From Octopus sinensis (lineage: Eukaryota), in NCBI RefSeq assembly GCF_006345805.1, contig NC_042999.1:120094001-120158000 (forward strand): a stretch of DNA of 64,000 nucleotides, written 5' to 3'. The notes below the pieces were generated by a model. The model was not told the DNA's origin. It did no database searches and saw only the letters and a list, made by a program, of their open reading frames with translations. The position numbers were made by a program, and so were the translations under genes. Below, in pieces: positions 13,833 to 56,531 of the stretch. Position 1 is the stretch's first letter; the number at the start of each line of letters is the position of its first letter.

Positions 13833-13915
13833 ATCATCCATATATCCTATAAACGGTTTCAGTGGTGCACATGCCCCAAAGAGTATATTATATCCTCCAG
13901 TTTGCATGTTATATT
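13833..13915 (-). CDS. Pif/BMSP-like protein, coding exon 5 (LamG C-terminal strands)
   Basis: gttttctacag|AA...GATGAT|GTAAGT, 83 nt, phase 1-0. Encodes (E)YNMQTGGYNILFGACAPLKPFIGYMDD, containing the LamG hallmark G-x-C...F-x-G-Y-M-D-D. Confidence 0.9.
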
Positions 13916-14714
13916 CTGTAGAAAACATGTGACGTTTAAATATCATTATTTACGTTGAAGAGGATTGTTTTTTCTTCAAAATGTCAAACGCATTGTTATT
14001 GTTGTTATTAAATCAAAGTTATCTCACATAAAATTGTTCTGTGATCAAATGTGCCGTCCCAAGTTAGCTTTGATCGAGAACATTAAGTTTTACCTATTGT
14101 TAGAGTGTGTTTAAAAGTGTACTATGCAATGTGCCATATTTCTTTAATGGCGGTTATACTTGATTGGAGTGAGATATGGCTCCTATTTGTAAAAGATTAA
14201 AGGATTGCATAGAAATATATTATAGACTTTTACAGAATAATTAGGCACCTGTCGACATGGCGGTCTTTTTAGCACCGTTATCATTATTATGCAGGTAGAC
14301 GACTAGCATTGACTATATTAATCGCTAATCAGCAATGCCGCAGTAGCAAGTGATCGGACCCACAAACGACTATAGAACAGGAATGTAACAGTTGCAGGTG
14401 CACTAAATATTGGTGCTGCGTAACGCAGAGAACCGAAACATTGAAGCTGAAGAAGTTACCACTAGATGGACTATGATACATGCTTAAAAATGCCAGAAAT
14501 CAAATGCATTTCCAAAACTTAAAAACATGCATGTAGAATTTCTTCATTTAAAACGAATGGTGAACTTCTGTCTCAGGCCACATACATATACTTGTGACAG
14601 TGCCCTTGACTGCATTTCAGTTAAAGTTAGAGGGGTAAATTTATTATCTAAGGTAACTTTCAGACTTGCAGACACATGAAAACAAATCCACTATGAAGCA
14701 TGTAGCAGATGGGA

Positions 14715-14753
<39 letters not shown>

Positions 14754-15499
14754 GAAAGCCTGACAGAGGGAGAGGAAGTGAAGGACAGAAGGAAAAAAGA
14801 AATAAACAAAGGAAAGAGAGAGAAAGAGAAACTGATACACATAAAAGTTCGTTAGATTTTCACCAATGAGTTTATATTGTTTTATTTTGAAGGTGTACAC
14901 ACCGTAGTGTTTACGTTGGTCTCTTAAGTTTCGCGTAAAACATCGTATGACATTTGTCATAAATTTCAAGACGCTAAAGTAACTACTGCAACCTTAATGT
15001 GTGTGTGTACGTATATGTGAGTATGTATACATGTATGAGTGAGTATGTATACGTTATGCATGCTTCAATGTACGTATATCTATCCACATAGGCTTCTAAT
15101 AATTGGCGGTATTAAGAATTAAAATATTGCATATAAACTATATAAATACTTTTGCCACAGACGCTGGATTGTCACATTTCAAACATAAAGTCATTTTTCT
15201 GATATGGATATAAACAAAGTTATTCGAGACTGTCTGTAAAGTGTCTGCATTTTCAAACGTCAATATCAGTCTAAATTATGATCTCTTTCCCATTTAAAGT
15301 AGCACATAAATATATACAAAATGTATGGTGGTGTCTGCTGAAGAGCACCTGTTATCTGAACAGTAATTAACTTGTTCCCACATCTTAAATAATTAAAATA
15401 TCTTAATATATTGAAAATGGAATATCAATCAAGATGAACACGAAAAATAGGAATCGAATACAACTTAAATGGTCATATCTGAAGTCTAGAGGCGGTAGT

Positions 15500-16170
15500 A
15501 GGAAAATGAAATATTTAGTTTTGACTCTATGCGCTCTAACTTTAAAAGCTGGCAGGTTTCTTGGTTGCAATGTGGCAGGCTTCAATGTAAAGTCACATTC
15601 TAAATCGAATACCCACCGCTCCACCTAACTTCACGAGATATGTTACTTATAATCTGGAAGATTAAAATGCTAAGGGGCAATTCGAGATATCATTCTTCCA
15701 CATGAACTTTATTGCAATATTGCACCACCAGCGAGGCGAACACTGCTATAACTTTCGTCAGCCCAGACACATCACAGTTGCTCAAATTAAATATTGGTGT
15801 CTCTGTTTTTTATTGAGTAGTACGTGTGTTTTCGTATGCCTGTGTTTAATCAATGATATATCTTCGTTTGTGAATAGCGTAGTATTAGGAACTTGAGGTG
15901 GGCCTTCAAACCTTATTTTCATTGCAAAAATGTACTGGAGTTCAAACTTGTGATAATGTAAAATAGGCAACGTTGTATACTTGTGCCTCAGAAAATAAAC
16001 AGCAGATGTGTTTCGATAGAGTTATTTACACGTAAGGGATTGTGGGCTAAAATTAGTAAATAGTCTTTCTCGTGTCATTGAAGTGATCTGGCGAATGCTG
16101 CAGAGCAGTGAATTAAATTTGGTACAGAAGGACGTTTCCTGCATCTAGGTTTCAAGACCAAGGGTTGGTA
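15500..16170 (-). pseudogene. decayed intronless CBM+LamG (Pif-like) paralog nested in intron 4
   Basis: cgtccttctg-taccaaatttaattcactgctctgcagc restores (C)PSGTKFNSLLCS with one base. The same frame then gives RERLFTNF, SAVYF, LPILHYHKFELQYIFAMKIRF, TTLFTNED and later WWCNIAIKF, in LamG3 motif order. Multiple stops and frameshifts. Confidence 0.45.
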
Positions 16171-16776
16171 GCTTTGTCGTTCACTTAAAGACATTTATTA
16201 TCGACAAATACAATAACCGTAATATAGTGGTTGCATTTAAATTCAGTCAAATATATTTGAATCCTGAGAGCATTTATTCTGAGATTAAAAATAAGTAACA
16301 TTCGATTACAAAAGATCTCATTAGTAAAGAAAAGGTATATAATTTATTATTATATCAGCTAATGATTGCTTTATTTGTTGATTAAGATTACTGGTGAATT
16401 AAATGTGGCAACGAGAGATTTCTCTATATTTAATAGATTTTTCACTCAAGAGACTCGGCTTTCAGCAAGATATGTCGAAACATCTAATGATTGTGAGGTA
16501 CATATGCCAACCCTTTGTGTACAAATATATCAATTAAGTAAGAAAGAACGCAATGAAGCAAGCTTCTGCGTCAGGTACTTTTTTTTAGCACTGAAAGAAT
16601 TGTACACAAAAGTTATTTCATGAGTTGAATAAATTGTAGAGTCAGATAAATAGAAATTACATATATGATGTTGCGTGCACTATCTAAAAACTTAGGCTAT
16701 GTAGTACACATGGATAATTATTGTAAAATACAAATAATCACGGATAATTTCTTTTGAAAGATAAAGTTAAATTTAC

Positions 16777-16867
16777 CTGAAACTTTAATAGATTTTGTCT
16801 CATGATTTACAGTTGCATTCAAGTTATGTTTGTTGAACAAGAAATATACATCATTCCAGTCGGATTT
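16777..16867 (-). CDS. Pif/BMSP-like protein, coding exon 4 (LamG domain, W-containing strand)
   Basis: attatttacag|AAA...TCAG|GTAAAT, 91 nt, phase 0-1. Encodes KSDWNDVYFLFNKHNLNATVNHETKSIKVS(E), which fits the LamG W-x-x-V-x-(L/F)-x-(Y/F)...L...V segment expected after exon 3. Confidence 0.88.
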
Positions 16868-17249
16868 CTGTAAATAATTATGAGAATATCATAAACAAAA
16901 CGTGTGCTTATTTAATACAAATAACACTGGTCTACATTTTGGAATTTTTAAATTTTTATTTTTATTCAAGGATGTGATCTTACATATACTTGGGTTGTTG
17001 ATTTTAAATATCTAAACCATTTTGCTTTATCACATATGGATATTCAATAACACATACATTAATCATAATAAAAACTGTGAATTTTTAATAAATTGCTACT
17101 TTATTACAATGAAGCAAGTAATCATGGAAAAAGCATATTCTGTTATTTTTAAGAACATATGTGTTCCAAATCAGCATGAATTGAATCATCAATCATCAAC
17201 ATTGAATCAAATGAATGCAAAAATATATGCTCCTAATGGTTAGCCTACA

Positions 17250-18860
17250 TATCGATTAAAATGAAGGAGTACTGCTTCGAATTCCGCTTGTGCTGTGCAT
17301 CCGGACCCTCACGTTTCAATGGCTAGTAGCAATCTTCCCTCACGCTGACATTCCAATTGCCCTTGTATTGAGCTTCCATCGTGCAAATATTCTGATGGAA
17401 GTGCTGTCCTTGTTCCACACAGTAGTGCCCACAATTCTTGGGAAAATCTAACATCTTAACTAAGATGTGAGTGCAGAAAGTGCAACTTGACACTCACTCC
17501 AGACCCAAACTGTTTGAAACTTGGATATATTTTTTCATATTCTGGGGAGCGGCTGTTTCCCAAAAGGTTTTGGATAATCTACTTGAAGGAAAAACCATGC
17601 ATTCACCTCGACACCTGCTAATACATCCTTAAAATGCTTGCCTTCACTTATTGATACAGTATTATTCTCCAAGTTATAGAAGGTCACTTTTACTCCAGGT
17701 ACATGAAAGCAACTCCTTGTATGTTCAGGGCCTTCATAAAAGTTTTCATAAGCCCTAATTCGATGTGGAATGGTACTAGCATACTTTTCTTGGGTTCATC
17801 TAGTGGCACATCTTTTACGTTGTGATTTCCGGATAAGAAGCTGGTAGCCAATCTTTTTGCTCATAGAGCTGGCTGTCTGCCTTACTATCTCAAAGACAAA
17901 TGAAACGCGGATACTTAGTGTATGTCCCTTGAAGACCTTGTAGGAAAACAATAACTTTCAAATCACCAGAAATGAGAAGCTTGTGATTATGGTACTTGAT
18001 GGCAGTTAATAGTGTCTTCATATTTTCATAAGTTTCTGACATTTAGACACTATGACCAATTAGTACAGATGCAGTTGTATTACCATTGTAGAGAAGAATA
18101 GTCTTTAGACTTCTGTTAAACGAATCAGCGAAGGGTCACCATTCGTCTGCTTTCTATGACATCCCCATGAGTCGAATAGGGTCAGAAATATTTGAAAAGA
18201 AATGCAATGAATCATGTTTCTCAAAGATCTGAGTGAATTCTACTTCCGATGTCGGTACCAAGCAAATGTTTCAGATGCTAAAAACTTCAGTCTAGAGCCA
18301 AGTAACTATGCACTTTCTTTTGGTCTCTCAGCAAGACATTGAACTGAGCTTGGTTGAAGAGTGTGGGATCGTCATTTCTTGATGGTTCAAAGTCTGCTTC
18401 TATCTCATTAGTATCACAAGTATCAGACTCTGATGAAATTTCCTGTCTCAAGTGACAGAGATACAGGAGCAACATCTGAGTGCGGAACAGGCCTAATTGG
18501 TGACGGAATATTTGGGTATATTATGCGATCCTTAGTCTTCTTATTGAATCCAACTACTTTAGTGATACAGAAGTAGCAGTCATCGTGATGGTCCATCTGC
18601 TCCTACCATAACATTGGTACTCCAACGGGCATGCACTTCAGTTTTTCAAGTGACCACATTTTGAGCAAACTAACGTGACTCTTGCAAGCTCTGTGAGGTA
18701 CAAATGGCTTGTCTTGTTCTTCTAGTTTGCAACCAAAATAAAGTAAATACCAGCGCTTCAACAAAGGAGTAATAGTGTTCCAAGAGTATGAAGGGGTGAA
18801 TTGCTCGCAGACATAGAAAATTATGAATATGTCTGGTGAATTTGTGCAGCCTCTAGACAT
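17250..18860 (-). mobile_element. CMC/Chapaev3-like DNA transposon transposase remnant (in intron 3)
   Basis: Minus strand: MSRGCTNSPDIF..FYVC..YFGCKLEEQDKPFVPHRAC...GVPMLW*EQMDHHDDCYFC, FNQAQFNVLLRD, PFHIELGLMKTFMKAL, NLLGNSRSPEY. The superfamily assignment is from recalled similarity and needs a Dfam/Repbase check. Confidence 0.75.
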
Positions 18861-20059
18861 ATTCGCAATCAGATATGAAAGAAAATATATTAGATTTAAT
18901 ATTCAAATCAATATAATGTAAGCATTTCCATTGGTAGTATATATTATCATTTATACAGAGAAATGTAACGTTTCTGTATAAATTGAAAACTTGATGTGAT
19001 ATAGAGGAATAAAAAACACCATGAATCGCTATGTATCATATGTATTTCAAAAAAAGATACTTTAAAAATATTATGCAGACCATTGTATTCTAACATAAAC
19101 TTATGTGGCTAATGTACATACTAACTGTCAGATGAACTTAGTCATTGCAACCTTTTTATTAGCATCGGTTTATGGATTTATTACAGAGTTTTTGATAATC
19201 CGAGAAGAAATCGTAGAAATATTATTTCATGGATGTCGAGTATTAGATACCTACATCTAGGTATTGTTGCTTTTAGCACACATCATACGACTTATTATTC
19301 ATTGCTATCATCACTCCACCTTTTATAGTCATTATTATTTTGTTATTACAGTTTTATTAAAGATTTTAACAATGTTCTGGAGAGTCGCTGAATATGTTGA
19401 TATGATCAAAAACATATACATGGAGAAGGACGAATGTTGTAAATTTCATTCTTTTTACAAGGCTAATTATAAATGAGCGGTAGAGTAAATCGAATGAAAA
19501 ATCAACTATAGACAGCAGGTTTTAAATTGAAGTATATGTGCCATATAAAATCTGATATAAGGATAAAACTAGAATCGATAATAAACTGTGTAAAACTTCG
19601 GTTTTAAACTATTCGAATTATACGGCTATGAAAGAGTAGGTTTACATCCTCAAGTTAAATCCACACTCCAAGTTGCATAGACAAAATTTAAGAACTTTTT
19701 TGGAATTTAAATAGTGGAACTTAAAGTGTTCCTAATAATATACTATATGGCATTTGGTTGCATTTCTTTAAATTCTAGTTCCTTTGTTAACAATTTGATT
19801 TGGTATTATCTTTCTTAAGCCGATAAAATAAATACTAGCCATGTGCCGGGGAGACGATGTAAATAACTATGCACTTGATTACATCGATGACAGTGGTTCG
19901 TGAGCATGACTAGAATTCGAGGACTTAAATCACTAAAAGAACCTGGTAAATGTTTATGAATCAGTTTGATACATAACACAAGTCTTCCACTTGGTTCGTG
20001 ATATTTTTATATCATTATAATTCATTATAATTCAACGTCAGAGAGTACTGCACTAAGCC

Positions 20060-20300
20060 GGGTCAAGTATTAATATCAGTTTCAAATTTTGGCCCAAGGA
20101 TAATGATTTCGGGGAAAGGGGATGATAAGTCAATTACATCGACCCGAGTGCTTAACTTGTACTTACTTCATCGAACCTGGAAGGATGAAATTTAAAGTTA
20201 ACCTCAGTAGAATTCGAACTGAGAACGTAAAGACGGGCGTAATGCTCCGTTAAACATTTCGTTCGGCGTGCTAAAAATTCTGCCAGGTCGCCGCCTTAAG
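20060..20300 (-). mobile_element. tRNA-derived SINE (ggcggcgagctggcagaa family)
   Basis: ttttggcccaagg tail...attcgaactgagaacgtaaagacgg...tctgccaggtcgccgcc head; same family as 32246, 32490, 49940, 52150, 53095 and 53655. Confidence 0.8.
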
Positions 20301-22878
20301 GGTAAGTATTCATTTTGCAACTAATATCAAAACTCATGGCTGGCAATTAATTACATTGAAGGTGTCATCAATTTATTTTTCATTTCTCTCATTTCACTGT
20401 ATATATTAATTGTCTTCGTTATTTAAATCAAGTTTGTAGAAATAGTGTTAGTCTTAAAATGCTCAAAAAAATTTTAGCCACATGATTTGATTAGTCTTAT
20501 CAAAATATACCACATATTAATAATTGCATGGCAACAGATGACACTTTCGGCAATATCCTTTAAATTATGAACTTATTGATTAGTTTAGATTATATTATAC
20601 AGAATTGATTTTAAAACTGGGAATCACGTTCACTATTTTTTTTTTTTTTTACATTTTTTCAGGTTTGTAAAAGGAAGGGCAGAAAATTGCTCTTCTTTAT
20701 AATTTCTCGGACAAGTGATGGAATGGGAGATTAAAAACCTTTATCAATAGAACAGTAATTGGTTGCGAATGCTTGCAAAACCTAAGCATTATTAAAAACA
20801 CCTGAGATCGATTTCAGCATCAAAATACGATACTAATTAAGTATGAAACACCAAAACATATACATTTGATATTCGCAGTTTTCGTCGAGAGTGACTCGTT
20901 CCTTGCTACAGACAGTTGTTTAAACTTTCAACATCTTGGGAAGCATGTAACTGTGAAACAAATGTAGTGATTATAAGGTTATATTTATGTAATAATGTGA
21001 ACAGCTGTTACCTAGTTAATCAATATCAATTTTAGAAACTCATTCCCTATGTGAGATCGACAAACAACACTAAGTGAAACAAACTTCAAAAATGTATTCA
21101 ATTTCAGGAAAATCCTGTATTAAAACTGATGACGCATATTATATAAAACGGAATGTGATATGATTTCGTGTTAACTGAGTCCGCACAAAATCACACGTAT
21201 CAGTGTGTGAGCCAATGTCTGTGTATGTATGCCTATGACTGACTGTCTTCGTGTTCACTTATATTCGATGGTTTTGTAACTTATGACTTACGCTTGACTA
21301 GTTTTGAAAGTAAGAAGGCTAAGGCCTGATTATTATAACATATGCTTATTTAAATGCTTTTTATTTTAACCACAGTAAAGCGTGCAAGACTCTACAGGAT
21401 GTCAATTCTGAAACAACATGAAAAAATCAAGCCAAGTATTATAAATTACAAGGCAATTATAAATATTTTGATGTTAAACAGGAGAACAAAATTCTGTGAG
21501 TATCAATGTTAATTTAATTTTTGTAATTATGACCATACTTAATTATTTATGACCTTTAGAAATAAGCTAATATTTGAAGAGTAATTATGAAAGTAATCAC
21601 TCTATAATGTATATTATTACTTATGGAAAAATCTGTATTTCCTTCGTTTCCAATTACAGTATACGTCGATATTTAGAGATATATATAACTATTAATATAG
21701 TGAAAGAAATGACTGAATTCTATAATGACAGTGTAATTTAAATACATACATTGAAGTAAGTGGGACTTTGATATTTACTATTAGAACGCGTCACTGGGGA
21801 CAAAATTTATTAATACATAGGATGATAAATTATTATGAATTAATGAAATGTTTCATTAGGAGTTGTTTAAGAGCATATACAAATAATTTCCGATGAATGC
21901 TGTAGTTTCTATTAAATTATTACTTTACGCCTGAATGAATGTATTTTATATATATTTGTGGTCTCATATGGTTTTAAGAATCAGCCAGGTTTATTACCTC
22001 TGTTATTAAGGGTATGTGCTTTGACTTATTGAGAAGGAATAGTAACCGAAATTAATAGGAAAATTAAATTCTTGCAAAGTTGATCAAAAATTGGAAATTA
22101 ACTTAATTTCGGTCTAACTCTCCTTAGAAGGTGAGCCTGTTAAATTCAAGTATTGAAATGTAATAATGCGTTGCTTAAAGTTTGCATGAAATGATTAACT
22201 TTAATTCCATTTTATATTTGGTAACTAATCAACATACCGAAAACTTTGTTCTCTTATTATATTTCTGAATTGATATATTTAGTATATCACCAACTGATGC
22301 TGACACTCAGTTGTTATGGTTAATAATCCGCGCAATTTCTCATTGATTAAAGGACTAAATATGGTATCTCATATATTTGGCTTTTTTTTCTCTTTTAACG
22401 TTTGTTACAACAAAATTGAAATATATTAAACTGCGCATCTCATAAATTTGTGTGCTTCTAAGGTCGTGTAAATTCTAAATAACTCCCAAAGGACAAATTA
22501 TATATTATGTCTTTGTGATTAAATGAGTAATCCACCATTAAGTGATTAAATACATTTAAATACATACATGGGAGAAATATAATGGTTAAATAAGCTTAAT
22601 ATTTGTGTTTACCGTACAAACCTCGGTATCACATTTTATTTCTGTAACAAGTGTGTCGAACCATACTGAAAATCAAACTATAAACTTTTGATCAATCTTC
22701 AGAAGCCATAATTCTACTGTATGTAGAAGCTTTAAATTCTATTTAGACAATACACACATACACACATATGTATATATATATATTACAGAAATAGGGTGAA
22801 AGATAATTAATTTAATAAAATCAACAAATTTCACTTGTAGTATTTCCGTATGGAAAAGGACCATATTGGGTAAAAACT

Positions 22879-23186
22879 TATATATTTATAACAATAAGGG
22901 TTTTGCAACAACTTGCTTGACCACATACCGAAAATTTTAGAAATAGCAGCCAAAGGACTACTGTTTCTTTTTCTACAAAAATCTGTCTCCACAGACAACA
23001 ATATTTGTAACAACAGTTCTTTTTCTACAAAAATATGTCTCCACAGACAACAATAATTGTAACAACAGTTACAAATATTGTTGTCTGGGGAGACATTTTT
23101 GTAGAAAAAGAAATAGTAGTCCTTTGGCTGCTATTTCTAAAATTTTCGGTATGTGGTCAAGCAACTTGTTGCAAAACCCTTATTGT

Positions 23187-23197
<11 letters not shown>
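22879..23197. repeat. inverted repeat (about 130-bp arms) enclosing a 52-bp tandem duplication
   Basis: 22881-23011 vs 23068-23196 show 3 substitutions and a 2-nt indel as reverse complements; 22965-23016 is repeated directly at 23017-23068. Confidence 0.92.
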
Positions 23198-23219
<22 letters not shown>

Positions 23220-23225
<6 letters not shown>

Positions 23226-23495
23226 ATCACGTGACCGACCAGGCCATCAGATGTAGTTACACATCGTTGGTCACAATGCGTTCGCATTGTTTTAGCCTTC
23301 GAATGACGCCACCCCGCTGGCTAAGCGAGCAGGCCGACAGAAGAAAGAGTGGTGCAAGAGTACAGCATGGATTACCACCCCCTGCCGGAGCCACGTGGAG
23401 CTTTTAGGTGTTTTCGCTCAATAAACAGTCACAACGCCCGGTCTGGGAATCGAAACCGCTAGTCCGCTGCCCTAACCACAAGGCCATTGCGCCTC

Positions 23496-23497
<2 letters not shown>
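23220..23497 (-). mobile_element. tRNA-derived SINE (cacgtgatcacgtg-tailed family)
   Basis: High identity to the copies at 56205-56490 and 56537-56798; head ...ccattgcgcctccac next to (CA)n. Confidence 0.88.
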
Positions 23498-23580
<83 letters not shown>

Positions 23581-23716
23581 TATATATATATGTATGTATA
23601 TATATATGTGTGTGTGTGTGTATCATATCTTCAGTCAGTCAGTGATACACGCTTCCCTGTAACATATCTTGATACACATAAGCACAACACGCACATTTAC
23701 GAACATTAATATATAC

Positions 23717-24075
23717 CTTCGATGCAAAAACCAATTCCGTGTTGTGTCTATGTGGACGAACAAAGATATGCACTTTGTCTTCTGCAGCAGAGGTAGCGTT
23801 CAGCATAATGCCAAGATTGGCTTTGTGATTATTTTCATCGCAGCTCATGAAAATTGCCTGCAATCCCTCTGTGAAGTCAGTTCTTTTGTAGGATAAATGA
23901 AACGTGATTCCATTAGGAAATGAATATCCATTATATCTCCAAAGTGTCAATTTTCCACCATTAAATATTCCTTTACCATCTTCTGTATTTACATTCATAA
24001 TTGCAATTGTCTGAAGGGAAGACGAAATATCTCTTATACCATTGTCAAAATTGATATGCAGTTCTTTAACACAAT
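23717..24075 (-). CDS. Pif/BMSP-like protein, coding exon 3 (N-terminal two thirds of laminin-G/LamG3 domain)
   Basis: tctgtttcag|AT...TCGAAG|GTATAT, 359 nt, phase 1-0. Encodes (D)CVKELHINFDNGIRDISSSLQTIAIMNVNTEDGKGIFNGGKLTLWRYNGYSFPNGITFHLSYKRTDFTEGLQAIFMSCDENNHKANLGIMLNATSAAEDKVHIFVRPHRHNTELVFASK. Matches the C-x-x-EL-x-x-x-FD...NV...G-x-x-x-FNG-x-x-L motif series of molluscan LamG3. Overlaps track ORF 23639-23998. Confidence 0.9.
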
Positions 24076-24774
24076 CTGAAACAGATAATTGAAAGAAGCT
24101 ATCAAGCTTTTGATTTTTATATATTAAGAACTGTCAATGAACGGAAAACTCAGAGTAAAAACAGGGGAGAGAGTTTTAGCATGTGATATATTAATAAAAT
24201 CTAATATAAGATTCAACACTTTCCCACTCGAATGTAAAACTAAACAGCTACGATTATGTTTATATAATATGAGTTCTTAACCATACGGCCTTGCTTGCGC
24301 GTTTCCCTATATTTTCTCTCATTATTTACAGTATATATACGCACTGGAATGTACGACACATAACCATATGTTAGGGCCCAGTAATAAGTTCCACATTAGA
24401 CTCTTGCGTCCATTGCTGTTAGAATTTTGGCATCAAACCTCGGGATAGACTAGTGTGCAGAATAATTGTTTCAGTAACTCAATTGGCAAGATTATGCAGC
24501 TGTTTGGCGAAATTTTATTCTCATCGAAACTCGGCACTAGCGTTTTCTACACAAGATACAAAGTACATTATTAGATTGTTTCAATATAAACCTCCGTTAC
24601 TAAAATTACTCATAACGCCCATGTAGTGGAATACTGGGGGACAAAATGCCCAGGATGACAAATGGAAAATAGACATGGTCAATGCAAAGAGGATAGTGGA
24701 TCAGTGGATGCTACGCCGTCTCTTATATCTTTAGACAGACGCTTATGCACATTCACAATTGTGCACATAGATAT

Positions 24775-24867
24775 ACAAGAGAGACAGAGAAAGAGAGAGA
24801 GATGGGGAAGAGAGGGGAAAAGAAGAAGGAGGAGGGGAAGAAGAAGAAGAAGGAGAAGAAGAAGAAG

Positions 24868-24899
<32 letters not shown>

Positions 24900-24955
24900 G
24901 AAGAAGAGAAGAAGAGAAGAAGAAGAAGAAGAAAGAAGAAGAAGAAGAAGAAACT
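24775..24955. repeat. purine-only (AG)n/(AGA)n tract
   Basis: Direct reading; explains the poly-R/poly-S/poly-F ORFs. Confidence 0.95.
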
Positions 24956-27158: not shown

Positions 27159-27189
<31 letters not shown>

Positions 27190-27218
27190 CCCCCCCCACA
27201 CACACATACACCCCCCCC

Positions 27219-27265
<47 letters not shown>

Positions 27266-27289
27266 TATATGCATATATGGGTAAAGCAC

Positions 27290-27874: not shown

Positions 27875-27887
27875 CTATCTATCTATC

Positions 27888-27985
<98 letters not shown>

Positions 27986-28090
27986 ATATCTGACTGTCTG
28001 TCTGTCTGTCCGTCTATCTATCTGTATTTATTTATTTCTATCCATGTATTTTCTATATATCTGTAGATAGATAGATAGATAGATAGATAT
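27875..28090. repeat. (TCTA)n/(TCTG)n and (GATA)n microsatellites
   Basis: Direct reading. Confidence 0.9.
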
Positions 28091-31000: not shown

Positions 31001-31269
31001 AGCAAGTTATTTTATCCAGCTCCGAAAAGATGAACGGCAAATTTGATTTTAAATTGCTAGGAGGGAACTGATTCGATGTTCCATACAAAATTTAATGAGA
31101 ACAATATAAAAAGAAATAAGATATATTTTGCAAATAGGGATACGTTAAGCATTTATTAATTGAAATAATACCATCACACACTTATTGAGGCAACCGAAAT
31201 GTACAGTAATAAACTAAGAATAAAGCATATAAAAGCATAGAGTAAATACTGTAGAGAGTCACTGCAACC

Positions 31270-31437
31270 GTTATTTACATTATTTATATTTGACGGGTAT
31301 TTGTCCTCATCTTGTTTCTTGTTAACACAATGTTTCGGCTGATATACCCTCCAGCCTTCACCAGGTGTGTTGGGGGAAATTTCGAACGTGGGTTATCATT
31401 CGTACGGTATTTTTCGATGTTGTCGTTGTTGTTGTTG

Positions 31438-31476
<39 letters not shown>

Positions 31477-31562
31477 TATTATTATTCATGTCAAGCTTGG
31501 AATCGAACTAGGAATCTTGGGGTTAGTAGCCCGCGCTCTTAACTACTACACCATATGCACGT
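31270..31562 (-). mobile_element. tRNA-headed SINE with internal (AAT)n and Penelope/hammerhead-type tail
   Basis: Minus-strand head atggtgtagtagttaagagcgcgggctactaaccccaagattcctagttcgattcc (A and B boxes), a microsatellite, then a tail with a hammerhead-like motif. Confidence 0.8.
31323..31371 (-). ncRNA. hammerhead-like motif in SINE tail (core mutated)
   Basis: AACACAC-CTGGTGA-a-GGCTG-gagggtatat-CAGCC-GAAAC-ATT-GTGTT: perfect 5-bp stem II and AACAC/GTGTT stem I; A6 changed to G. Confidence 0.55.
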
Positions 31563-31568
31563 GAGTAA

Positions 31569-31571
<3 letters not shown>

Positions 31572-31645
<74 letters not shown>

Positions 31646-31824
31646 TAATAATAACATCGAAAAATACCTTAGGAATGAGAACCCAGGTTTGACATTTCCC
31701 CAACACACTTGATGAAGGCTGGAGGGTACATCAGCCGAAACGTGTTAACAAAAAACAAGATGAGGAGAAATAACCCTCAAATGTCAATAATGTAGATAAT
31801 TCCTCATCTCTTAAATATAGAACT
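31572..31824 (+). mobile_element. headless copy of the same SINE, inverted relative to 31270-31562
   Basis: (TAA)n then acatcgaaaaataccttaggaatgagaacccagg...cctcatctcttaaatatagaact; reverse-complement match to 31270-31420. Confidence 0.8.
31702..31747 (+). ncRNA. hammerhead-like motif in SINE tail (core mutated)
   Basis: AACACAC-TTGATGA-a-GGCTG-gagggtacat-CAGCC-GAAAC-GTGTT: C3 changed to T and a short deletion at the cleavage site. Confidence 0.55.
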
Positions 31825-32064
31825 TTATCACGGCAACCGTTTACAAAAACAATTAATTGAAACAATTAAACATTGCTTTTAATAACCAATTGCTTCTTTT
31901 AGTTTCGTACAAAATCATGAACTATACACTATTAGCAAAATTATACAATTTATGTTTTGGGGGGGAGAAGTAATCACATTTTTTATACCATATTCAGTTG
32001 ATGAATATTTTAAAATAGGCATTGAGATGCTGCTTTCTTATAAGCGTCAACTTAAAGAACTTAC

Positions 32065-32214
32065 CAGTTTTACTTTTCGTAAAAGAAGAACATGAGCACA
32101 GAGACTGATTGAACTGGGAACCTAATGCACAACGTCTGGTCATCCAAATTCCGTTCACGTAGACCTCGTATAGTATTGGGTTAGTTAAGTTAGCTTTATA
32201 GTTCGGACACCCAC
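32065..32214 (-). CDS. Pif/BMSP-like protein, coding exon 2 (4-Cys chitin-binding/peritrophin-A-like module)
   Basis: ttttcttacttgaacag|GT...ACTG|GTAAGT, 150 nt, phase 1-1. Encodes (S)GCPNYKANLTNPILYEVYVNGIWMTRRCALGSQFNQSLCSCSSFTKSKT; pattern C-x25-C-x10-C-x-C with W and CxxGxxF, as in the short CBM that precedes LamG in Pif-family proteins. Confidence 0.88.
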
Positions 32215-32245
32215 CTGTTCAAGTAAGAAAACTAGAGATGTGATA

Positions 32246-32645
32246 TTGGTCTCAAATTTTGGCACAAGGACAGTTAGTTCGGAGGAGGAAGTAAGTCGAT
32301 TATATCGCTCCAAGACGTCGATTGATAACTATTTTATTGATTCCGATGGACGAAAGGTAAAGTCGACCTCGGCGGAATTTGAACTCAGAAAGCAAAAACC
32401 GGACGAATGCCGTTAACTATTTTTACCCGGGATGCTAATGATTCATCTGGCTCACCGCCTTCGCTAAATATCATATTAAACGTAATATTAGCGTCCGTCT
32501 TCATGTTTTAAGTTCAGAATCCCACGAAGTCAAATTTGCCTATCATACCTTTCAGGGTCGATAAAATAAGTACTACTTTATCACTGGGATCAATGTAATC
32601 GACTTATCCTCTCCCACGAAACTGCTGGCCTTGTGCGGAAACGTG
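32246..32645. mobile_element. head-to-head pair of SINEs (minus 32246-32462, plus about 32490-32645)
   Basis: Both belong to the ggcggcgagctggcagaa family; the tails (ggcacaagg / ccttgtgc) point outward. Confidence 0.75.
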
Positions 32646-34571
32646 AATTCAAAGTTTACCATTAGTATTACTGACATATGCATTAGCTTACTAGCGTACA
32701 AAACACATATTAAAATATGTATACTATTATATGCCTATAATTAACAAGAACAATGAAATGCATTCTTAAAAACGACCAGGAAATATTATAAAATAGATTT
32801 TTCTTGATATTAATAATCAAACAAGAAACATTACAAAGGCAAAGAATATTCGAAATAAACATTTATACGAAAATAAATCAGTCTTTATTTCCTGTGAAAA
32901 TTGTTGTGAATTGTTTCATATTACAAAGGTCTTTATCTCAACTTAATGAATTGTTATTGTTGGTATTGTAAGACAATAACAACATTCAAAATACATATCT
33001 AATTTAATTTTACCATAGTATGCTAAAGATCATGTTTATCTACGGGAAGGCCTATTCTGCAAGAATGCAAAATAGTAAATTAAATAATATTCAGCATATC
33101 TTCGCTAGCTATATATTTAATGATAATATGAAAAGGAAATGACAATTCTGAAAGAATTGAATTCAAAGTTCGAGAAAGTGGAATGAAATTCGCTGTGGTT
33201 AAACACACTAATTATACAAAATTCCATGATATTTGAACTGATGATAATATTTGTAAAAAATCAGATTAAATTAAAATGTATGATGCTGAATTTCAAAACT
33301 GCAACTAGGATCAGCACTGACAATGTTGAGTGTAGGCATCAGAAACTTGTTCAGTAAACGTAAAAATACTAAACATCAAACATTCGCTTAACTCACACAA
33401 TACCATATCAAATCTAGAAAAGAATACAGTTGAAGAGAGAGCTTTCTACTTAACTATATAATTAATATATATAAACTTTTACCTAATACCACTGTAATGA
33501 AGTAATTGTAACGCAGCTGACTGAAAATTATGATCTATGCTTGAAAAAGTCTTTTGTGTTTTGAACTCTCACTCTCTACATCCTCAGGCTCTTATTGCTA
33601 GGTCTCTTTGATCGAGTTAGAATGTGTCATACTTTGCTTTTCTGTTCGTGATTGTTTTAATTCTTTCAGGATATGAGTATAAAAGAAGATTTATGACAAG
33701 TCAGAATGAGAAATAGGTAATTAAAATACAGGAAGTAGCTGGTGAAACGTTTCGAGATGTGTCTGCAGGCATGCTGATATATTAGTATTTACTGACCACT
33801 AGAAACAGGTAATATTGAACATTGTGAAGTAAATCAACAACAAAGTAAATGGATATCCGTCAGTTTTAGTGATGAGTATTCTGCAGTTTGAATGACAGAA
33901 ATAACTTCTCATTAAACTAGCAAATAAAATAGCCTAGTATTCTACGGATATTCGTATTGTTTTTACTTATCCCTCTAAAGAGTAATACAGTGTTAAAAGG
34001 TTGGGTATTTAAATTATAGTTACAAACCGTCTGGGGTGCGCCTTTGCAATTTCCGTCTCCACATTTCTCCTCTATGGTTATGAAATAGGTTTAAAGAAAC
34101 TTGATTCAGACGCCACACAGTGCGATTGATTTTGGAACGGTATCGTGATTGCGAATCGAACCGATTAATCGGCCTGCCATAGAACTGCTGGATAAAGTAC
34201 ACGCGACCACACACACACACACACACACACACATACAGACACACACACACACTCACACACACACACACACACACGCACGCACACGCACACGTGAAACTAA
34301 ATTGCTGTAAGCTGATTTCTGTTTTGTTTTTGAACAGTCATAACACGAAACTGGCTGGAATAAGTTGGAATAAATATATATTCTACCGTGTCTTACGTGT
34401 TTTTTTTAATTTAAATGCTATATTTTCATTCTAGCTAGAATACATTCTAGCTAGAATTGTGCTGAAAGTACTGCAAAACTGGGACTAACATTTTAAATGA
34501 ATTGGTATAAGTCGTTTAAATTGCTTATGCTAGTACAGTAACGCTTTCTCTATTGTTCTTCTTTGTTGCAG

Positions 34572-34700
34572 ACATATAACGGGTTCCAAGCAGAAACAAT
34601 GTGATGTCATTGAGATTGTGACGAATGAGACATGTAAGCTGCCTTACATTCACAGAATGCTACAGGTTGTTTCCAGAGATGACAAGAGCAATATGTACAG
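34572..34700 (+). CDS. candidate antisense exon (unknown product)
   Basis: Excellent acceptor tttctctattgttcttctttgttgcag| and donor ACAG|GTGAAT, 129 nt, a single open frame (phase 2-2): HITGSKQKQCDVIEIVTNETCKLPYIHRMLQVVSRDDKSNMY. No family recognised. Confidence 0.3.
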
Positions 34701-34949
34701 GTGAATAAAAGATACAAAGGAGGGGAACCAGCATAGAATTCAAATAATGCAACTAGAAGCCGTTAATATCGAACACTGACATGTATCACCAGTGAGTGGT
34801 TGAACTGAATCGAGTGGGCAACGGAGTTATAATACGTGAGCTGGTTGTAGGACATGCATGACAGAATGGTTTGGTGATTATAAAATGGAAGCAAAGCTAA
34901 TAGCTCGTTAATCGATATCTGCTTTAAGGGAGATAGATTTGTGGGACCC

Positions 34950-35530
34950 TACTCTTATCTCTTGAAAGCCAAAGATATATTTTTTGTTACACACAGTGAC
35001 AGATATGTATCTTATACTTCCGAACCTGAAGAGTCATTTCAAGGAATAGAGTCACACTTCTAAAAGCTCAAGAGCGAGCGATCGGCAAAGAAAGTAATGG
35101 TTTCTTTATTGGAATATGATAAGGATGTCACTCTTCATTTCCTGGAATGTGGCTGTATCATATACAGCTAGCAGAACATTCACTGGAAACGTTGAAAATG
35201 GTAAAATAGTGCTTTAGTAAGACGAAACTAAACAAATAACTTAAAATGATGCAATTAAACCATGACAATGTGTCATCATACGAACCTTCAACAACAGACA
35301 AATCAATCAACAAATTCAGCGGATTAGTTGCACATCTCGGGTCTGGGTCACCTCAGATTTTGCACTCTCTGAGCTGTTCAGTCTAAGGAAAAGACTTTCA
35401 GGAACAACTATTCAATAACTGAGATGATGTGAAGGAGTGGGCACAACAGTGCAAAGCACAAAGGGTTCCTAGTGTCTGGTTCGACAATGGTGAAAATGCA
35501 TCGCTTTTGATGGAAACTATATTGCGTAGT
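34950..35530 (+). mobile_element. mariner transposase remnant
   Basis: Degenerate motifs in order: VT-S-D..(TGDETW), AKKVM, HDN, and RQW*KCIAFDGNYIA* (RWxKCIxxxGxYVE). Confidence 0.55.
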
Positions 35531-36414
35531 ATCTTTTAATAGACAAAATGTTACTCTAACAACATATGTAATTTGAACGACCTCTCTCGGTTAATATACA
35601 TTTATATTTATTTTTGCATTACATTTGATAGCACCTGTCCGCGCTACCTGTCCGCGCGTACATATATGAATGTGATTTTATATGTTTCACGATGAGTCTG
35701 ACGTGAAATAAGAATTAACTTGAACGTTTTTTTATCACTACCTTTTTATCCCCAGATTTGACATTCAAAGAGCTGAGAATCGCCAAGTGAAACAATATTT
35801 TTTCCTGTACTGTTTTGTCCTCTCAGTGTAGCGTTTCAGATAAAATGATTTTCGCGGAACCAATACCCACACAGACATACACGCACACACATACACACAC
35901 ACTTATGCCGTTCAGAATGAATTTATAGTTATCTTGTATACAGACATACCTAACCAATATTGAATTAAGATAATTCATATAATATTTCGGCAGGCGAACT
36001 AATTGACACAACAAATCCTCTACGAGATTATTGTTGCAGACGAAGGTCTCCACCAGTTTTCTTAGATTCCCAATTGAAGACTTTATTCGATATTGAACTA
36101 AATTATCATCTCTGCGTAATATAAAACGTCTGGAAATATCCTAAACTTGAAATATTAAAATTATTTTAAGTATCACACTGTCTGTGTCAGAGGTGTTGTC
36201 ATATACATTAAGAGCATAAATGATAGATGGTGTGAAACCATAATTATCAAACCAGCAGGAAGTTCTCTCTCTCTATGTATCTATCTATCTATCTATCTAT
36301 TTATCTATTTATCTATCTGTCTACCTTTATCTCTCTGTTGCGTTATATCAGTCATGTAATCACACGCGTGTTGTTCGGGAAATTTTTCCTTGCCGGACGT
36401 TTTTGTTTTACTTT

Positions 36415-36446
36415 TTGACGAAGAGCTATGGTCGAAACGCTAAAAA
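36415..36446 (+). ncRNA. decayed hammerhead-like motif (PLE terminus)
   Basis: tttt-TTGACGA-agagc-tatg-gtc-GAAAC-gct-aaaaa; same layout as the motif at 45727. Confidence 0.35.
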
Positions 36447-37929
36447 CCACCCCCTTTTGCTTTTTGTTCGGCTTTTATCAAACGTCAAACTACGACATTC
36501 CTTGCGTACGTCCCCACGTTATTTTCATATCGTTATTTTTAATGTTCATCTTTTAAAATTCGATTCGACTATACGCACTCCCCTAGACCCTCTCTTCACT
36601 ATAAAATCTTTAACAGACACAATAAAAATTACCTTTACTTGTTATATATCAATAAGCAAAAGACAAATCAAGCCTGCCTTGGATGCACATGCAAATACAA
36701 ATTCAAATGTCCTCTACGACACACGTGCGATATCTTACGTTGTTAATGAAGCGCAGATTTCAGCGAACTACGACAATAGTCATACAGTGAACAAATGTTA
36801 TATCAGGGACGTAGAATGAAAATTTAGATCCGCATATAACAACCATCTTTCGAGTTTTAGGTTTTAATCTGGAAACGTAAACGCGAAGGGATCAGTTTCA
36901 AATGAAATATTTACTCTAAAGCCAGATCTTATGTTAACGGGTCCAAAAAAAGTTCAGCATGTTCTCTTGAAAATCTTTATCGCTTAAAGAACTTGAGAAA
37001 CTTCAACAGATGCATAAATGTCAAGGATGAGGTATTTTGTTTGTCTGCATTTCAAAAAATACATTTTGTCGGAATTTAGAAATAGAGAAGATAAGGATAG
37101 AAGTCACAAGACAAATGGATAGGATAAAAAAATATAATAGAAATATCAAAAGATAAACGAACAATAAAAATGAGGTAAAGAAGAATATAAAGAGATACTG
37201 AGTAACTGACTAAACAAGAAACAATAAAAAAGCAGTGGAAGAAAGAGAATTGTGCTTGCTGAGCTATAAATAAATTTAGAAGAAAATTTAGAAAATGAGA
37301 ATATTGTACCAGGGTCGATCTTTATGGGAGAACAATCAACAGCATTGTGGAGAAACAGTATTGTAGGGCAATAATCGTCACCATTTGATTATAGAAAGAA
37401 AAAGAAAGGCGTATGTGATGAGAAAAGATTAAGAGGGTGTGTCATAAAAGCATTACATTAATATTTTAAACAGCTGAACGCAAAATGACAACACCTTTCG
37501 CACCAATCCATCCAGCCTTGATTCTACGTGGTAGTCGAGAATCTCAGCAGCAAATTACAGTTTATGTAATTGTAATTTATATTTTAAAGTTCATTTTATA
37601 TTTGGGAAATAAATTACTAATGGTTGAATTTCGAAAGCGCCAGTTGAAATCTGACATAGATTTACGAGGAATACAAAATGGTAGGAACATTGTGCAGATA
37701 GAAAATTATTTTAAAATATCTATTGTAGGAATTCATAAATAGCGATTAAAATACAATGGATAGCTACAAACCATGAAGATTACATAAACCATTTTCTGTT
37801 TTCAAATAAAGCCAACAAGTAGAAAGCAGGTAGTCGTGAAAATACGGATGAAACAACAATAAATAATGTAAAATGGCTAAAATCTAGGGGTGCAGAATGT
37901 CTCTCCATTCAGGATAGAGTCTGTACGAG

Positions 37930-39160
37930 TTGAAAGTAAATAAGCAACACTGATAGAGGCACCGAGGTTTTATGCTAAGTTTAAATGGTTCTCGACTACA
38001 CCACTGGATCATGCTCACACTTCAGAACTCATTTAGTGTAACAATTAGGAGAGAAAACGGTACTGGAAGGGAAACAGGTAGTACTACCGTTACTGCTGTC
38101 TTTGGAACTGTTTTCCGTCGCCGACCCTCCACCATACTTCTCCAGCCCTTTATGATTATGTGCCCTCAAGAGGATTTTGATATTACAGCTACAGCAAATG
38201 CTACTTTTTGTCCTACATATTCAGAATACAACTCTTCTTACCGCCTTTCTAAATTGGGCCGATTTGGGATTTTCGTGGCTCATTAGAGTTATAAATCTAT
38301 CCAGGTCCCTGCGGATGTATGCCTTCTTCTATTATATCTACAGGGATTACCAGTCAATACTGCGATACAACGATGACAATAATCCAAGAGCGAATGTCCT
38401 AACCACCTTTCTCTCGCGCTTATGACTCTTTAGCCCAAATACTGAGGATACTTATATAGTAACGGGTGCGTGCCTTACAAGTTTAGCTTTAATATTAGCC
38501 TTTTTCTAACTGGTCTCTGTTTCTGTTGAGACGTAATCTGAAAACGAAATGTCCACTCAATAAAAAGTGTATTTACCCACATTAGATCGATAGTGATGGA
38601 AAACTGGAAACTGAATTGGATGATAAAATCGCAGGTGCTGCACAGTAATGTTCCAGCTCCAACATTCAACCTGCAGAAGAAAGATACCCGCTATCGTCAA
38701 TTCGATTTTTCACGTCGATTCTCACTTATCGTCATGGATGACAAAGAGTACGATCGTAAATACACGCAGTCTAAATGGGATTCCCCGCAAAAAAGATTTA
38801 GAATAATGTTACGGGATAGGTGCGTAGCTCGGAGATCAAGACTTCTCTCTTTGTCGAGCTCCTATTTCTCCGCATTCAGATATCATCGTTCCAGTGCTGC
38901 CAACACATGACTGGAATGCTACAGAAAAGTATTGTAATGCAGCCTTTTCAAGCTGAGCCCTCCGGCAGGAAGCCTACGGGTAGACTAAGAACGAGATTAC
39001 TGGATCATATCTATAGTCTCAGCTGGGCATGTTAAGTAATCCAGCAGGTAAATGTAATGTGGATTACTTTTAATGGGACCTTACTGAGGGGATGCCTGTG
39101 GTTTCTACCACCATAGCTCTCCCAGGAATCGTAAGTGGAGAAGCCGGAGGGATGTATGAA
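37930..39160 (+). mobile_element. RTE-clade (Rex3/Expander-like) LINE remnant
   Basis: LRxxCVxSP-like RT segment near 38310, DGKLETELDD(K)I near 38595, and LRDRxRSSEIKTSLFVELLFLRIQ...GRKPTGRLRTRLLDHI (track ORF 38820-39035). Confidence 0.85.
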
Positions 39161-40345
39161 ATATGTGAACACAGCAATATTTGGCAATCAGGAAAAGATA
39201 ATTAGCTAAGATTATATTTTGTGGCTGTTGTCGTTGTTATTATATTTTGTTGCAAAATACAAAATATACAATATCATATTCTTAATGATTTTTCTTCTTA
39301 ACGTTAACTGCAGATCATTAACAAAAAGGCCCCAAGTAGAAAATATATTTCTATGAATAAGAACTGCTTCAAAAATGACTAATATTTTGAGCCCTCGCAT
39401 ATGTTACTTGATGTCCAACCCTCATTTCATAGTTGTTAAGAGATCGGACTCAATGATTAATTGGCACTAATTTCACTTTTAAATCTGGGCAGTCTTATAT
39501 TCTCGATATTCTCATATAATGTTTGGTTTACAGGGATCATTTAGAGTCGCTCTTCATTCAGCAATATTAGCAAAACGTAAATATTAGTGTGATATAATTA
39601 CATATAGTTTAGATTAATCTGTTCGTTAAAATTAAATGAAATGAAAAAAAAATAATAATAAAATGAGAATTTAAAGCGTTGTTTGCACTATTTACGGCGT
39701 GATCAGGAATGATTATTTGCATATTTATTCTTAACACGACTAAGCAGGCAGATTCACGCAAAATGTTCTGAATGCTATAGTATATGTTTTATGATGAATA
39801 ACGTCTCTGTTTTAGACATCAGTGCGTTCAACAAAATGGTCTCATTGACGCACTGCATCACGGGATACCGTTGCTTTGACATGATGTGTCACGTCAACCA
39901 AAAGTAGTCGGAAGGATGGGAAATCTCATCTTAGCAACAGTGGACTTTTACTCAAGAACCACTCGTTCCTTATCCTGCTCGAAGAGACATATTACTCCAT
40001 CTGGGCTTCACTGCCGATATAGACTTTATTTATGAAGTTGTGCTGATATCAAAAATCGTTATTGTAATGTATGAAAGAATATTTCGTCGGTTTAACAAAA
40101 TGTCTTCATGTATTTACTTATTAGTTTCTAATTTCTGAGAGTGAATTTAGCAAATGTCGAATCCTTCGCATTCAAATAGGTCAATATATGGTGTTATGTA
40201 TATATAATGTGTAACCAGTCAGTAGATAATTTGAATCCTATTCTTGAGTTCCAGTAGGTGTCACCCAATTTAAATATGACACTTATGCGCTTTTGAAAAG
40301 CATAGTCATCACTATGCCATTCTAATAGTTGTTGGAGCACGAAGC

Positions 40346-40415
<70 letters not shown>

Positions 40416-40756
40416 TGTGTGTGTGTGGAGTGAGAGAGTGAGAAATATATTGTAATCTATCTGTATGTCAAGTGATAGTTAGATTGCTAGATATATACAT
40501 GCATACACACAGTATTGTCTTTTTCACTTGTTTAATATCAACGTTTGTCGGTAATCTTACGATTCAGAATATATAACAGTAAAAAGGTCACTTATAATGT
40601 TGAACTTTTGAATAAGTTCTTGAAATAAGAATTGTATGAAAACTCGTGTCTACACATGTATTCTATGTGTGTATTCTTGCATGTTAACATTACAGTTATT
40701 TGAAAATATACACATAACCTCTTGAAAAGAAGAAAAATAATATCACGATAGCTTAC

Positions 40757-40925
40757 TGTATGTAGTTGTTTTCATTGGAGTAGAATCTCCGGACATTACT
40801 TCGGGTAGTTTTGCCTCCAATTGAAGTGTGTTCGTGTTGTTCAACGGAAAATTTCTACCAAATGAAACCTCAATCACCATGCTCATTAATAGACATGTCT
40901 CCAATAATTTTTGGATATGTGCCAT
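40757..40925 (-). CDS. Pif/BMSP-like (CBM + LamG) secreted protein, coding exon 1 (signal peptide + Thr/Ser-containing linker)
   Basis: Acceptor cttcaacacag|ATTGCACT (exon starts 40933), ATG at 40925, MAHIQKLLETCLLMSMVIEVSFG-RNFPLNNTNTLQLEAKLPEVMSGDSTPMKTTTY, then A|GTAAGC phase-1 donor after 40757. The phase matches the acceptor at 32214. The N-terminus is signal-peptide-like. Confidence 0.7.
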
Positions 40926-41519
40926 AGTGCAATCTGTGTTGAAGTTAAAGATATTTAGACATATAAAAACACTTCAAATAATAAAAATAACCATATCTAA
41001 ATATCAATTACGTCTATGCTATCAGTTCACTTTTAATTTAATAAAAATCTCCTGTTTCCAAATTTTATTACAAGTTTTGACTCTTCACAAAATCACTGCA
41101 AATATAAAACATCGAAAGAAATCACAAATGTACGCTTGGTGACATAAATCTTTAGATTTGTCAAACTACTTTTCAAAGCGAATAACTGTCTGCATTCAAA
41201 TTTATATAGGATATATCTGTTTCGATATATACAAAATGAATCATTCAAACAAATATTTCCTTCAAAATGCTTGATTATTTTTGTTTTGAACATTTTCAAC
41301 AATATCATTCAAATTAAGATTTTAACCAAATGTATTTAAATGGAAACATCCGTCCTCATCTATTATTTATTTTCATTTGTGAAGTTTAGAGGTACAGGAA
41401 AACAAAATAGAATGACAGATCAATAATGTACTTCAAAATAAAACAATCTATTATGTTCCCTTTTACACTACTACTTCTGCTAAAACAACAATGACAATAA
41501 CAGTAACTACTACTACTAC

Positions 41520-56489: not shown

Positions 56490-56531
<42 letters not shown>

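Follow-up and report, generated by a model that had tools for sequence, protein, structure and literature searches.

A six-exon octopus gene related to molluscan shell-matrix proteins and encoding little more than a predicted CBM14-like and LamG cassette

The window analysed here is a stretch of 64,000 nucleotides from Octopus sinensis (RefSeq assembly GCF_006345805.1, contig NC_042999.1, positions 120,094,001 to 120,158,000 of the forward strand). Its minus strand carries a genuine six-exon protein-coding gene of the Octopus sinensis/vulgaris group, known in RefSeq as 'asparagine-rich protein-like'. The product of this gene consists of nearly nothing but one unit, a CBM14-like chitin-binding-type module followed by a LamG domain. 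Members of the molluscan BMSP/LamG3/Pif/NRP superfamily, shell-matrix proteins among them, carry this unit as a conserved cassette at the C-terminus. Taking all the evidence together, we consider it reasonably probable that the gene specifies a small, secreted matrix adaptor built of the cassette. An earlier note on this DNA, made from the letters alone, had described the locus as a 'hidden' gene of 27 kb and five exons for a minimal Pif/BMSP-like secreted protein, and that description is followed up here.

Gene structure and annotation

The four intron lengths of the earlier note (8542, 7989, 6849 and 2861 bp) were used in a brute-force search of all GT...AG pairs on the minus strand from 40933 to 13833. 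The search returned only one stop-free splice solution, with five exons and a product of 284 amino acids (aa). The same four junctions are confirmed by the O. sinensis RefSeq protein, which is identical, and by the separately annotated protein of O. bimaculoides, which aligns without gaps; the five minus-strand exons and four GT-AG introns of the note are thus borne out. All five donors of the complete gene read gtaag, gtaaa or gtata, and the acceptors end in cag, each after a pyrimidine-rich tract. Upstream of the ATG, the nearest in-frame stop is 17 codons away.

The five exons are, however, not the whole gene. Beyond a fifth intron of 9219 bp lies a sixth exon, which adds 12 C-terminal residues and brings the product to 296 aa, so that the gene spans about 36.4 kb instead of 27 kb. 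Exon 6 holds Cys290, a residue that is invariant in the family, and the earlier model was therefore one conserved exon short. When the six-exon coding sequence (CDS) of the window is translated, it gives exactly XP_036357582.1. A tblastn search found no second copy (paralogue) of the gene within the window. The features of the gene are collected in Table 1.

As for the annotation, the gene can hardly be called hidden, since it is already present in RefSeq for two species. The O. sinensis entry, XP_036357582.1 ('asparagine-rich protein-like', 296 aa), is 100% identical to the six-exon product, and the O. bimaculoides entry, XP_014778743.1 ('asparagine-rich protein', also 296 aa), is 95% identical with no gaps. 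The word is partly fair for O. vulgaris only, where CAI9719900.1, a fragment of 111 aa, is the sole fragmentary annotation of the three. The C-terminus of this fragment, EPYLTPIKYNRH followed by a stop, is encoded at 14144-14182 on the minus strand, inside intron 4. The O. vulgaris model is thus truncated: exon 3 has been joined to a spurious terminal exon, and exons 1, 2, 4, 5 and 6 are missing. In a word-index search of a collection of 5.8 billion proteins with the single sequence, the close match was one three-member cluster only. The practical results are a corrected six-exon model and evidence that the O. vulgaris annotation is faulty.

Table 1. Features of the six-exon gene in the window (a slash marks the exon boundary; N followed by a number is the asparagine of a sequon)
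Feature	Position	Strand	Content
Exon 1	40757..40933	minus	CDS start, ATG at 40925; codes for aa 1-56 and the first base of codon 57; donor CATACA/gtaagc
Exon 1, contents	40925-40857 (aa 1-23)	minus	Hydrophobic N-terminus, a putative signal peptide; a disordered linker with sequon N29 follows
Exon 2	32065..32214	minus	4-Cys CBM14-like module, aa 57-106 (C59, C85, C96, C98); sequons N65 and N92
Exon 3	23717..24075	minus	Initial two thirds of the LamG/ConA-like domain, aa 107-226; invariant C108 and F116; sequon N199
Exon 4	16777..16867	minus	LamG strands, aa 226-256; W230; sequon N243
Exon 5	13833..13915	minus	LamG strands, aa 257-284, GAC...FIGYMDD; invariant G280; ends in the donor GATGAT/gtaagt, not in a stop
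Exon 6, coding part	4575..4613	minus	ISLYTCIPRGAK and TGA; acceptor ttttccag/ATA; final LamG strand; invariant Cys290
Candidate polyadenylation signal, AATAAA	4451..4456	minus	118 nt 3' of the stop codon; motif match only

Conservation and selective constraint

The O. bimaculoides locus has the same six exons over a gene span of 36,155 bp, and the window as a whole is colinear with it at about 87% DNA identity. Together with the complete identity of the protein to that of O. sinensis, this agrees with the octopus-like genome that had been suspected from the letters. Between the two species, 32 of the 888 nt of the CDS differ, an identity of about 96%, as against 86.7% for the colinear whole gene region, which is mostly intron. 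Exon 3 alone reaches 98.3% DNA identity, and a third Octopus-like sequence matches the same exon at 93%. All the cysteines and the five sequons (N29, N65, N92, N199 and N243) are kept in O. bimaculoides.

The differences between the window and O. bimaculoides divide into 16 synonymous and 16 non-synonymous ones. They correspond to 0.092 substitutions per synonymous site (dS) and 0.023 per non-synonymous site (dN), a dN/dS of 0.25, and neutrality is rejected by a binomial test with p = 2.5e-4. The octopus gene is under purifying selection and is functional. Because of this conservation and the low dN/dS, a gene-prediction artefact or a pseudogene was ruled out.

A related proposal is that the gene is a decaying, functionless relic of a shell-matrix gene, left behind after the loss of the shell. 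The proposal would account for the absence of the VWA and canonical CBM14 domains of the longer relatives, for a very long branch in the family tree and for the Pfam models no longer matching the protein. The 296-codon reading frame and all ten splice sites are, however, intact in both O. sinensis and O. bimaculoides, the dN/dS is significantly below 1, and the third Octopus-like sequence retains the same exon 3. Moreover, every family-invariant cysteine and glycine is kept, and the structural model of the protein is a confident one. With these on the other side, we regard a relic as very improbable.

The protein and its predicted folds

The spliced product contains the C-x25-C-x10-C-x-C pattern, the LamG motifs and the five sequons that had been read from the sequence. 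It is also free of VWA and non-acidic, as the note had stated. No VWA was found in the octopus protein either by Pfam at E<=10 or by a jackhmmer VWA profile made from the relatives. The mature protein has an isoelectric point (pI) of 8.55, with 23 Asp and Glu against 27 Lys and Arg, and holds no acidic or repetitive low-complexity region; asparagine makes up 9.5% of the protein overall.

At the N-terminus, the hydropathy has its maximum (about 2.0) at residues 7-22. The relatives of the octopus protein have clear signal peptides, and on these two grounds the hydrophobic N-terminus most likely acts as one too. Between this putative signal peptide and the module lies a disordered linker of about 34 residues, so that 57 residues in all precede the module. 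In an AlphaFold2 (AF2) model of the full protein, made with a 47-sequence alignment, residues 2-13 form a helix, and the predicted local distance difference test score (pLDDT) stays below 50, indicating disorder, up to residue 56. The mean pLDDT is 81, and most of residues 60-296 are above 85 and all-beta.

The exon-2 module has, according to its predicted structure and profile comparison, the CBM14/peritrophin-A fold with the second and third canonical cysteines lost. A profile of the module was compared by hhalign with the canonical CBM_14 domains of the same relatives, and the match had a probability of 86% and an E-value of 4.6e-6. In this alignment, canonical cysteines 2 and 3 are replaced, while C59, C85, C96 and C98 remain (four of the six). 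An AF2 model of the module alone, built with 24 homologous modules, has a pLDDT of 88. When it was searched against PDB structures with Foldseek, the top 12 matches were all CBM14-type chitin-binding domains (template modelling, TM, scores of 0.6-0.76; probabilities of 0.97-1.0). Aplysia EHEP was the best, and the others include Der p 23, Der f 23, human chitotriosidase CBM14, Blo t 12, Avr4 and tachycitin.

It was also observed that the 4-Cys form is not peculiar to the octopus but is the form of the module directly before LamG family-wide. Isolated juxta-LamG modules gave sub-threshold Pfam matches to CBM_14 in two of ten relatives and none for the octopus, and a hidden Markov model of the canonical CBM14, built from the relatives, had no match in the octopus proteins. 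The structural evidence suggests that throughout the family this module, missed by Pfam, derives from CBM14.

Residues 108-296 are modelled as a beta-sandwich of the ConA/LamG type, a generic fold assignment that carries no ligand information. The part encoded by exon 3 is all-beta with a pLDDT of 85-98. The Foldseek matches of the full model in the PDB are ConA/LamG-type jelly rolls only, at E-values of about 1e-7 and identities of 10-15%. They comprise the lectin-like N-subdomain of the clostridial neurotoxin binding domain, domain 4 of a GH43 arabinanase (TM 0.60, normalised to the target), and further collagen IX NC4, NEL, PAPP-A and trans-sialidase lectin domains. A sequence search of the PDB with the octopus protein gave nothing meaningful. 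The opening and closing segments of the sandwich each hold an invariant cysteine, C108 and C290 respectively. The pairing of a chitin-binding-type module with LamG, as proposed from the motifs, is thus supported by the models and by the hhalign comparison.

The clostridial neurotoxins among the top matches were considered as a sign of a toxin relationship. This was rejected; the likeness is that of a generic ConA-like jelly roll, at 10-15% identity and a TM of about 0.35 when normalised to the target.

The same fold matches bear on another explanation, by which the protein is a soluble secreted lectin of mucus, digestive fluid or immune recognition, its LamG domain and CBM14-like module recognising glycans in solution or on microbes or prey. 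Two carbohydrate-binding ConA-like domains, the lectin domain of trans-sialidase and domain 4 of the GH43 arabinanase, are indeed among the best matches. For the module, Aplysia EHEP, which came out best, consists of CBM14-like domains and occurs in digestive fluid, and tachycitin is an antimicrobial chitin binder. The octopus protein is, besides, small and has neither a multimerising VWA nor repeats. The fold matches are, however, only 10-20% identical and say nothing on the ligand, and the named sequence relatives are all of the matrix type, none being a characterised soluble lectin. A soluble lectin is therefore judged to be unlikely.

Homologues and family position

A phmmer search against 1.84 billion cluster representatives gave 99 matches at E<=1e-3, of which 23 reach E<=1e-10. 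Nearly always, residues 60-293 or so of the query align to the extreme C-terminus of the match. All 20 looked-up clusters that carry a name are molluscan. They include NRP_PINMG of Pinctada margaritifera (H2A0M0; Asparagine-rich protein, 'Prism uncharacterized shell protein'; E 1.3e-15). The other named relatives are 'asparagine-rich protein-like' proteins of Mytilus, Dreissena and Argopecten, a 'protein PIF-like' of Mya arenaria, a 'Shell matrix protein' of Mizuhopecten and a 'sushi-like' protein of Mytilus coruscus, which carries VWA and CBM_14. When Pfam was run on the relatives, VWA, CBM_14 and Laminin_G_3 were found. A word-index search with the 47-sequence profile returned three proteins only and gave no names for the distant relatives.

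In the alignment of 47 sequences, six columns are invariant (C85, C98, C108, F116, G280 and C290) and three are nearly so (C59, G88 and C96). The matches were also scored with profiles. The top-ranked ones are NRP-like relatives that have, like the octopus protein, neither VWA nor a canonical CBM14. Among the lower-ranked matches that span the whole cassette, most hold a canonical CBM14 and about a quarter a VWA as well. Judged from these sequence comparisons, membership of the BMSP/LamG3/Pif/NRP shell-matrix superfamily is firm, and the octopus protein probably belongs to its NRP-like subfamily. The Pif/BMSP-like assignment of the earlier note therefore stands at the level of the superfamily and of the homologous C-terminal unit. 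It fails at the finer level, since the nearest relatives are not Pif or BMSP proper but NRP-like proteins without VWA or canonical CBM14.

A maximum-likelihood tree of the CBM-like and LamG cassette was built from 76 rows, none of which is a labelled cephalopod LamG3 sequence. A clade of 63 rows, with a support of 86 in the Shimodaira-Hasegawa-like approximate likelihood ratio test (SH-aLRT), holds nearly all the members with VWA or CBM14, along with PIF-like proteins of about 400 aa. The two octopus sequences lie outside this clade, in the basal region with the NRP-like proteins. In the best tree they form one side of a branch together with the NRP-like proteins, with a support of only 18.8. 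When they were forced to join the Mya PIF-like group of about 400 aa, the tree was not rejected by the approximately unbiased test (p-AU 0.10).

The names of the relatives bring in a further explanation: the protein could belong to the matrix of a structure that is still mineralised or semi-mineralised in the octopus, such as the aragonitic statoliths or the stylets, with the ancestral biomineral role kept. The closest named relative is a protein of the Pinctada prism layer, and other relatives are named as shell-matrix proteins. A LamG3/Pif-like protein is also known from the calcified Argonauta hians eggcase and from the Nautilus shell (Setiamarga et al.). Against a mineral role stands the composition of the octopus protein, which is basic and has no acidic or repetitive carbonate-binding region of the Pif80 kind. 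We take such a role to be rather improbable.

Two short matches (P0054 and P0068) were tried as orthologues from cephalopods other than Octopus, and this was abandoned, as they led to eukaryotic contigs of ENA metagenomes that are uninformative on taxon. The contigs, ctg73038l and ctg212751 (L002 and L003), hold exon-sized pieces of homologous CBM-like and LamG genes. On one of the contigs, the 4-Cys module and the start of LamG were matched as two pieces with some 360 bp between them, and this gap may be an intron placed as in the octopus gene, where exon 2 gives way to exon 3. On L003, an open reading frame (ORF) encoding VWA lies about 5 kb upstream of the homologous match.

Proposed function

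The explanation that we prefer, a small secreted adaptor made of the CBM14-like and LamG cassette, can be put as a series of steps. The protein would be secreted and N-glycosylated at its five conserved sequons, and would then become part of a chitin-containing extracellular matrix. There, the aromatic-rich hairpin of the CBM14-like module (Y72, Y75, W80 and F91) may contact chitin. The LamG sandwich, presumably closed by a C108-C290 disulfide, would bind a partner of its own, a glycan or a further matrix protein, which would make the protein a small adaptor or cross-linker in a chitinous matrix. A role in a non-mineralised chitinous matrix, as the earlier note had suggested, is plausible.

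Several observations weigh against this explanation. The direct Pfam search of the spliced product, which the note had offered as a check, gave neither LamG nor CBM. Its only match was a chance one to Pch2_N (E 0.12), and no family was assigned. This is the very outcome that the note had set against itself; the domains emerge through the relatives and the predicted structure. Similarly, Pfam CBM_14 matched neither the whole octopus protein nor, even at E<=10, the isolated module. The Foldseek E-values of the 49-residue module are weak (0.02-0.6), though its match list is specific. With two of the six CBM14 cysteines absent, chitin binding may be lost or altered. Two glutamates lie within the N-terminal hydrophobic stretch. 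In the tree, the octopus pair sits on a long branch of 1.77 substitutions per site, and its placement near the NRP-like proteins is not fixed. Lastly, within the searchable literature, no paper cites the accession numbers of the octopus gene. The literature on 'asparagine-rich protein' in cephalopods, on PUSP1 and on the chitin-binding proteins of the octopus stylet and shell sac likewise yielded no expression or functional data for the octopus gene.

Other features of the window

A perfect inverted repeat of 233 nt (56266-56498 and 56529-56761, with a spacer of 30 nt) is made up of an interspersed element some 210 nt long. The element recurs at 23251-23459, within intron 3 (93-94% identical), and at 51033-51162, around 51.1 kb (88%). 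The copies adjoin TA/CA microsatellites or lie within a few hundred bases of them. ARAGORN found no tRNA-like gene in the window. The inverted repeat could be a pair of short interspersed nuclear elements or an assembly artefact.

Intron 3 also holds, at about 17300-18900 on the minus strand, ORF fragments of 50-99 aa in shifting frames with an HDDCYFC motif. Pfam assigned no family to these fragments, and the region looks like a decayed coding region of a mobile element or a retrocopy. Another anomaly, one of composition, lies at 44001-46000, where the GC content is 0.46 as against about 0.33 elsewhere, with a GC skew of -0.37 and an AT skew of -0.18. Two ORFs on the plus strand (119 and 140 aa), in which Pro, Ser and Leu are frequent, overlap it.

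Comparison with known chitin-binding and shell-matrix systems

The CBM14 domains of human chitotriosidase, tachycitin, Cladosporium Avr4, Der p 23 and Aplysia EHEP resemble the octopus module in fold, as far as its predicted structure goes. The octopus module differs from such canonical domains in having four of the six cysteines and an unusual C-x-C, in a sequence identity of only 16-22% and in giving no Pfam CBM_14 score.

The octopus protein shares its superfamily with Pif (Pif97/Pif80) of Pinctada fucata and BMSP of Mytilus galloprovincialis, and relatives bearing VWA and CBM_14 can be aligned to it along the juxta-LamG module and LamG. When set against Pif and BMSP as classified in PMC11291548, the octopus protein has no VWA, no canonical CBM_14/ChtBD2 and no acidic carbonate-binding region of the Pif80 type, but the homologous C-terminal LamG/ConA-like domain is kept. 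In the published phylogeny, Pif proper is limited to some bivalves, and the BMSP of O. bimaculoides has a single VWA domain.

The studies on Argonauta by Setiamarga et al. split these proteins into BMSP, LamG3 and Pif, the LamG3/Pif-like ones consisting of ChtBD2 (one to three copies) and Laminin_G_3 without VWA. Genes of this kind were reported in all cephalopods, including O. bimaculoides (Ocbimv22010162m), and were said to be kept by shell-less octopods for reasons that were left unexplained. A VWA-less Pif-like gene in an octopus without a shell, put forward in the earlier note, had thus already been published. The LamG3/Pif-like proteins of A. hians, Nautilus and O. bimaculoides have a signal peptide, one or more chitin-binding modules and a C-terminal LamG3, with no VWA. 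The octopus gene matches this plan by fold and remote homology, not by Pfam thresholds, and its signal peptide is putative. While up to three ChtBD2 domains can be recognised in the members described so far, the octopus protein has one degenerate module that escapes Pfam. In the paper supplement and the Nautilus paper, no link was found between the octopus gene and Ocbimv22010162m.

A more specific proposal sets the octopus gene apart from the published cephalopod LamG3 gene. It would be a separate, strongly reduced and fast-evolving octopod offshoot of the NRP-like lineage, whose bare cassette has been re-used in a chitinous structure other than a shell (for example the stylet, beak, radula, sucker lining or gut cuticle). 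This proposal is tentative, and we hold it as possible but doubtful. If it is true, the gene would offer a compact and tractable handle on the retention of shell-matrix genes by shell-less cephalopods; the Argonauta papers themselves raise this question for octopods, niche though it is. With gene, family and puzzle all known beforehand, the current understanding is unchanged. The octopus gene is nevertheless, among those compared, the smallest natural version of the cassette with which nearly all BMSP/LamG3/Pif/NRP proteins end, and this makes it handy for experiments on the binding partners of the cassette and its site of action.

The nearest of the known systems is that of the NRP-like proteins (NRP_PINMG and those of Mytilus, Dreissena and Argopecten). 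These are the nearest tree rows to the octopus pair, and RefSeq named the octopus gene after them. They differ from it in length, being of 458-2320 aa, two to eight times longer, and having long N-terminal regions where the octopus protein has only its 34-residue linker. The first 420 residues of NRP_PINMG contain 13.1% Asn, against the overall content in the octopus protein, from which this long Asn-rich N-terminal region is absent. The identity between the octopus and NRP-like proteins is only 24-33%, and NRP is named as a protein of the shell prisms whereas the octopus is shell-less. Their C-terminal 260 or so residues are, however, homologous to the octopus protein, with octopus residues 36-293 aligning to 420-680 of NRP_PINMG, and they are the top full-length matches, their E-values running from that of the Pinctada protein to 2.8e-22 in Mytilus. 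The 4-Cys module, the LamG domain and the C-terminal cysteine are common to both, as is the lack of VWA and of a canonical 6-Cys CBM14.

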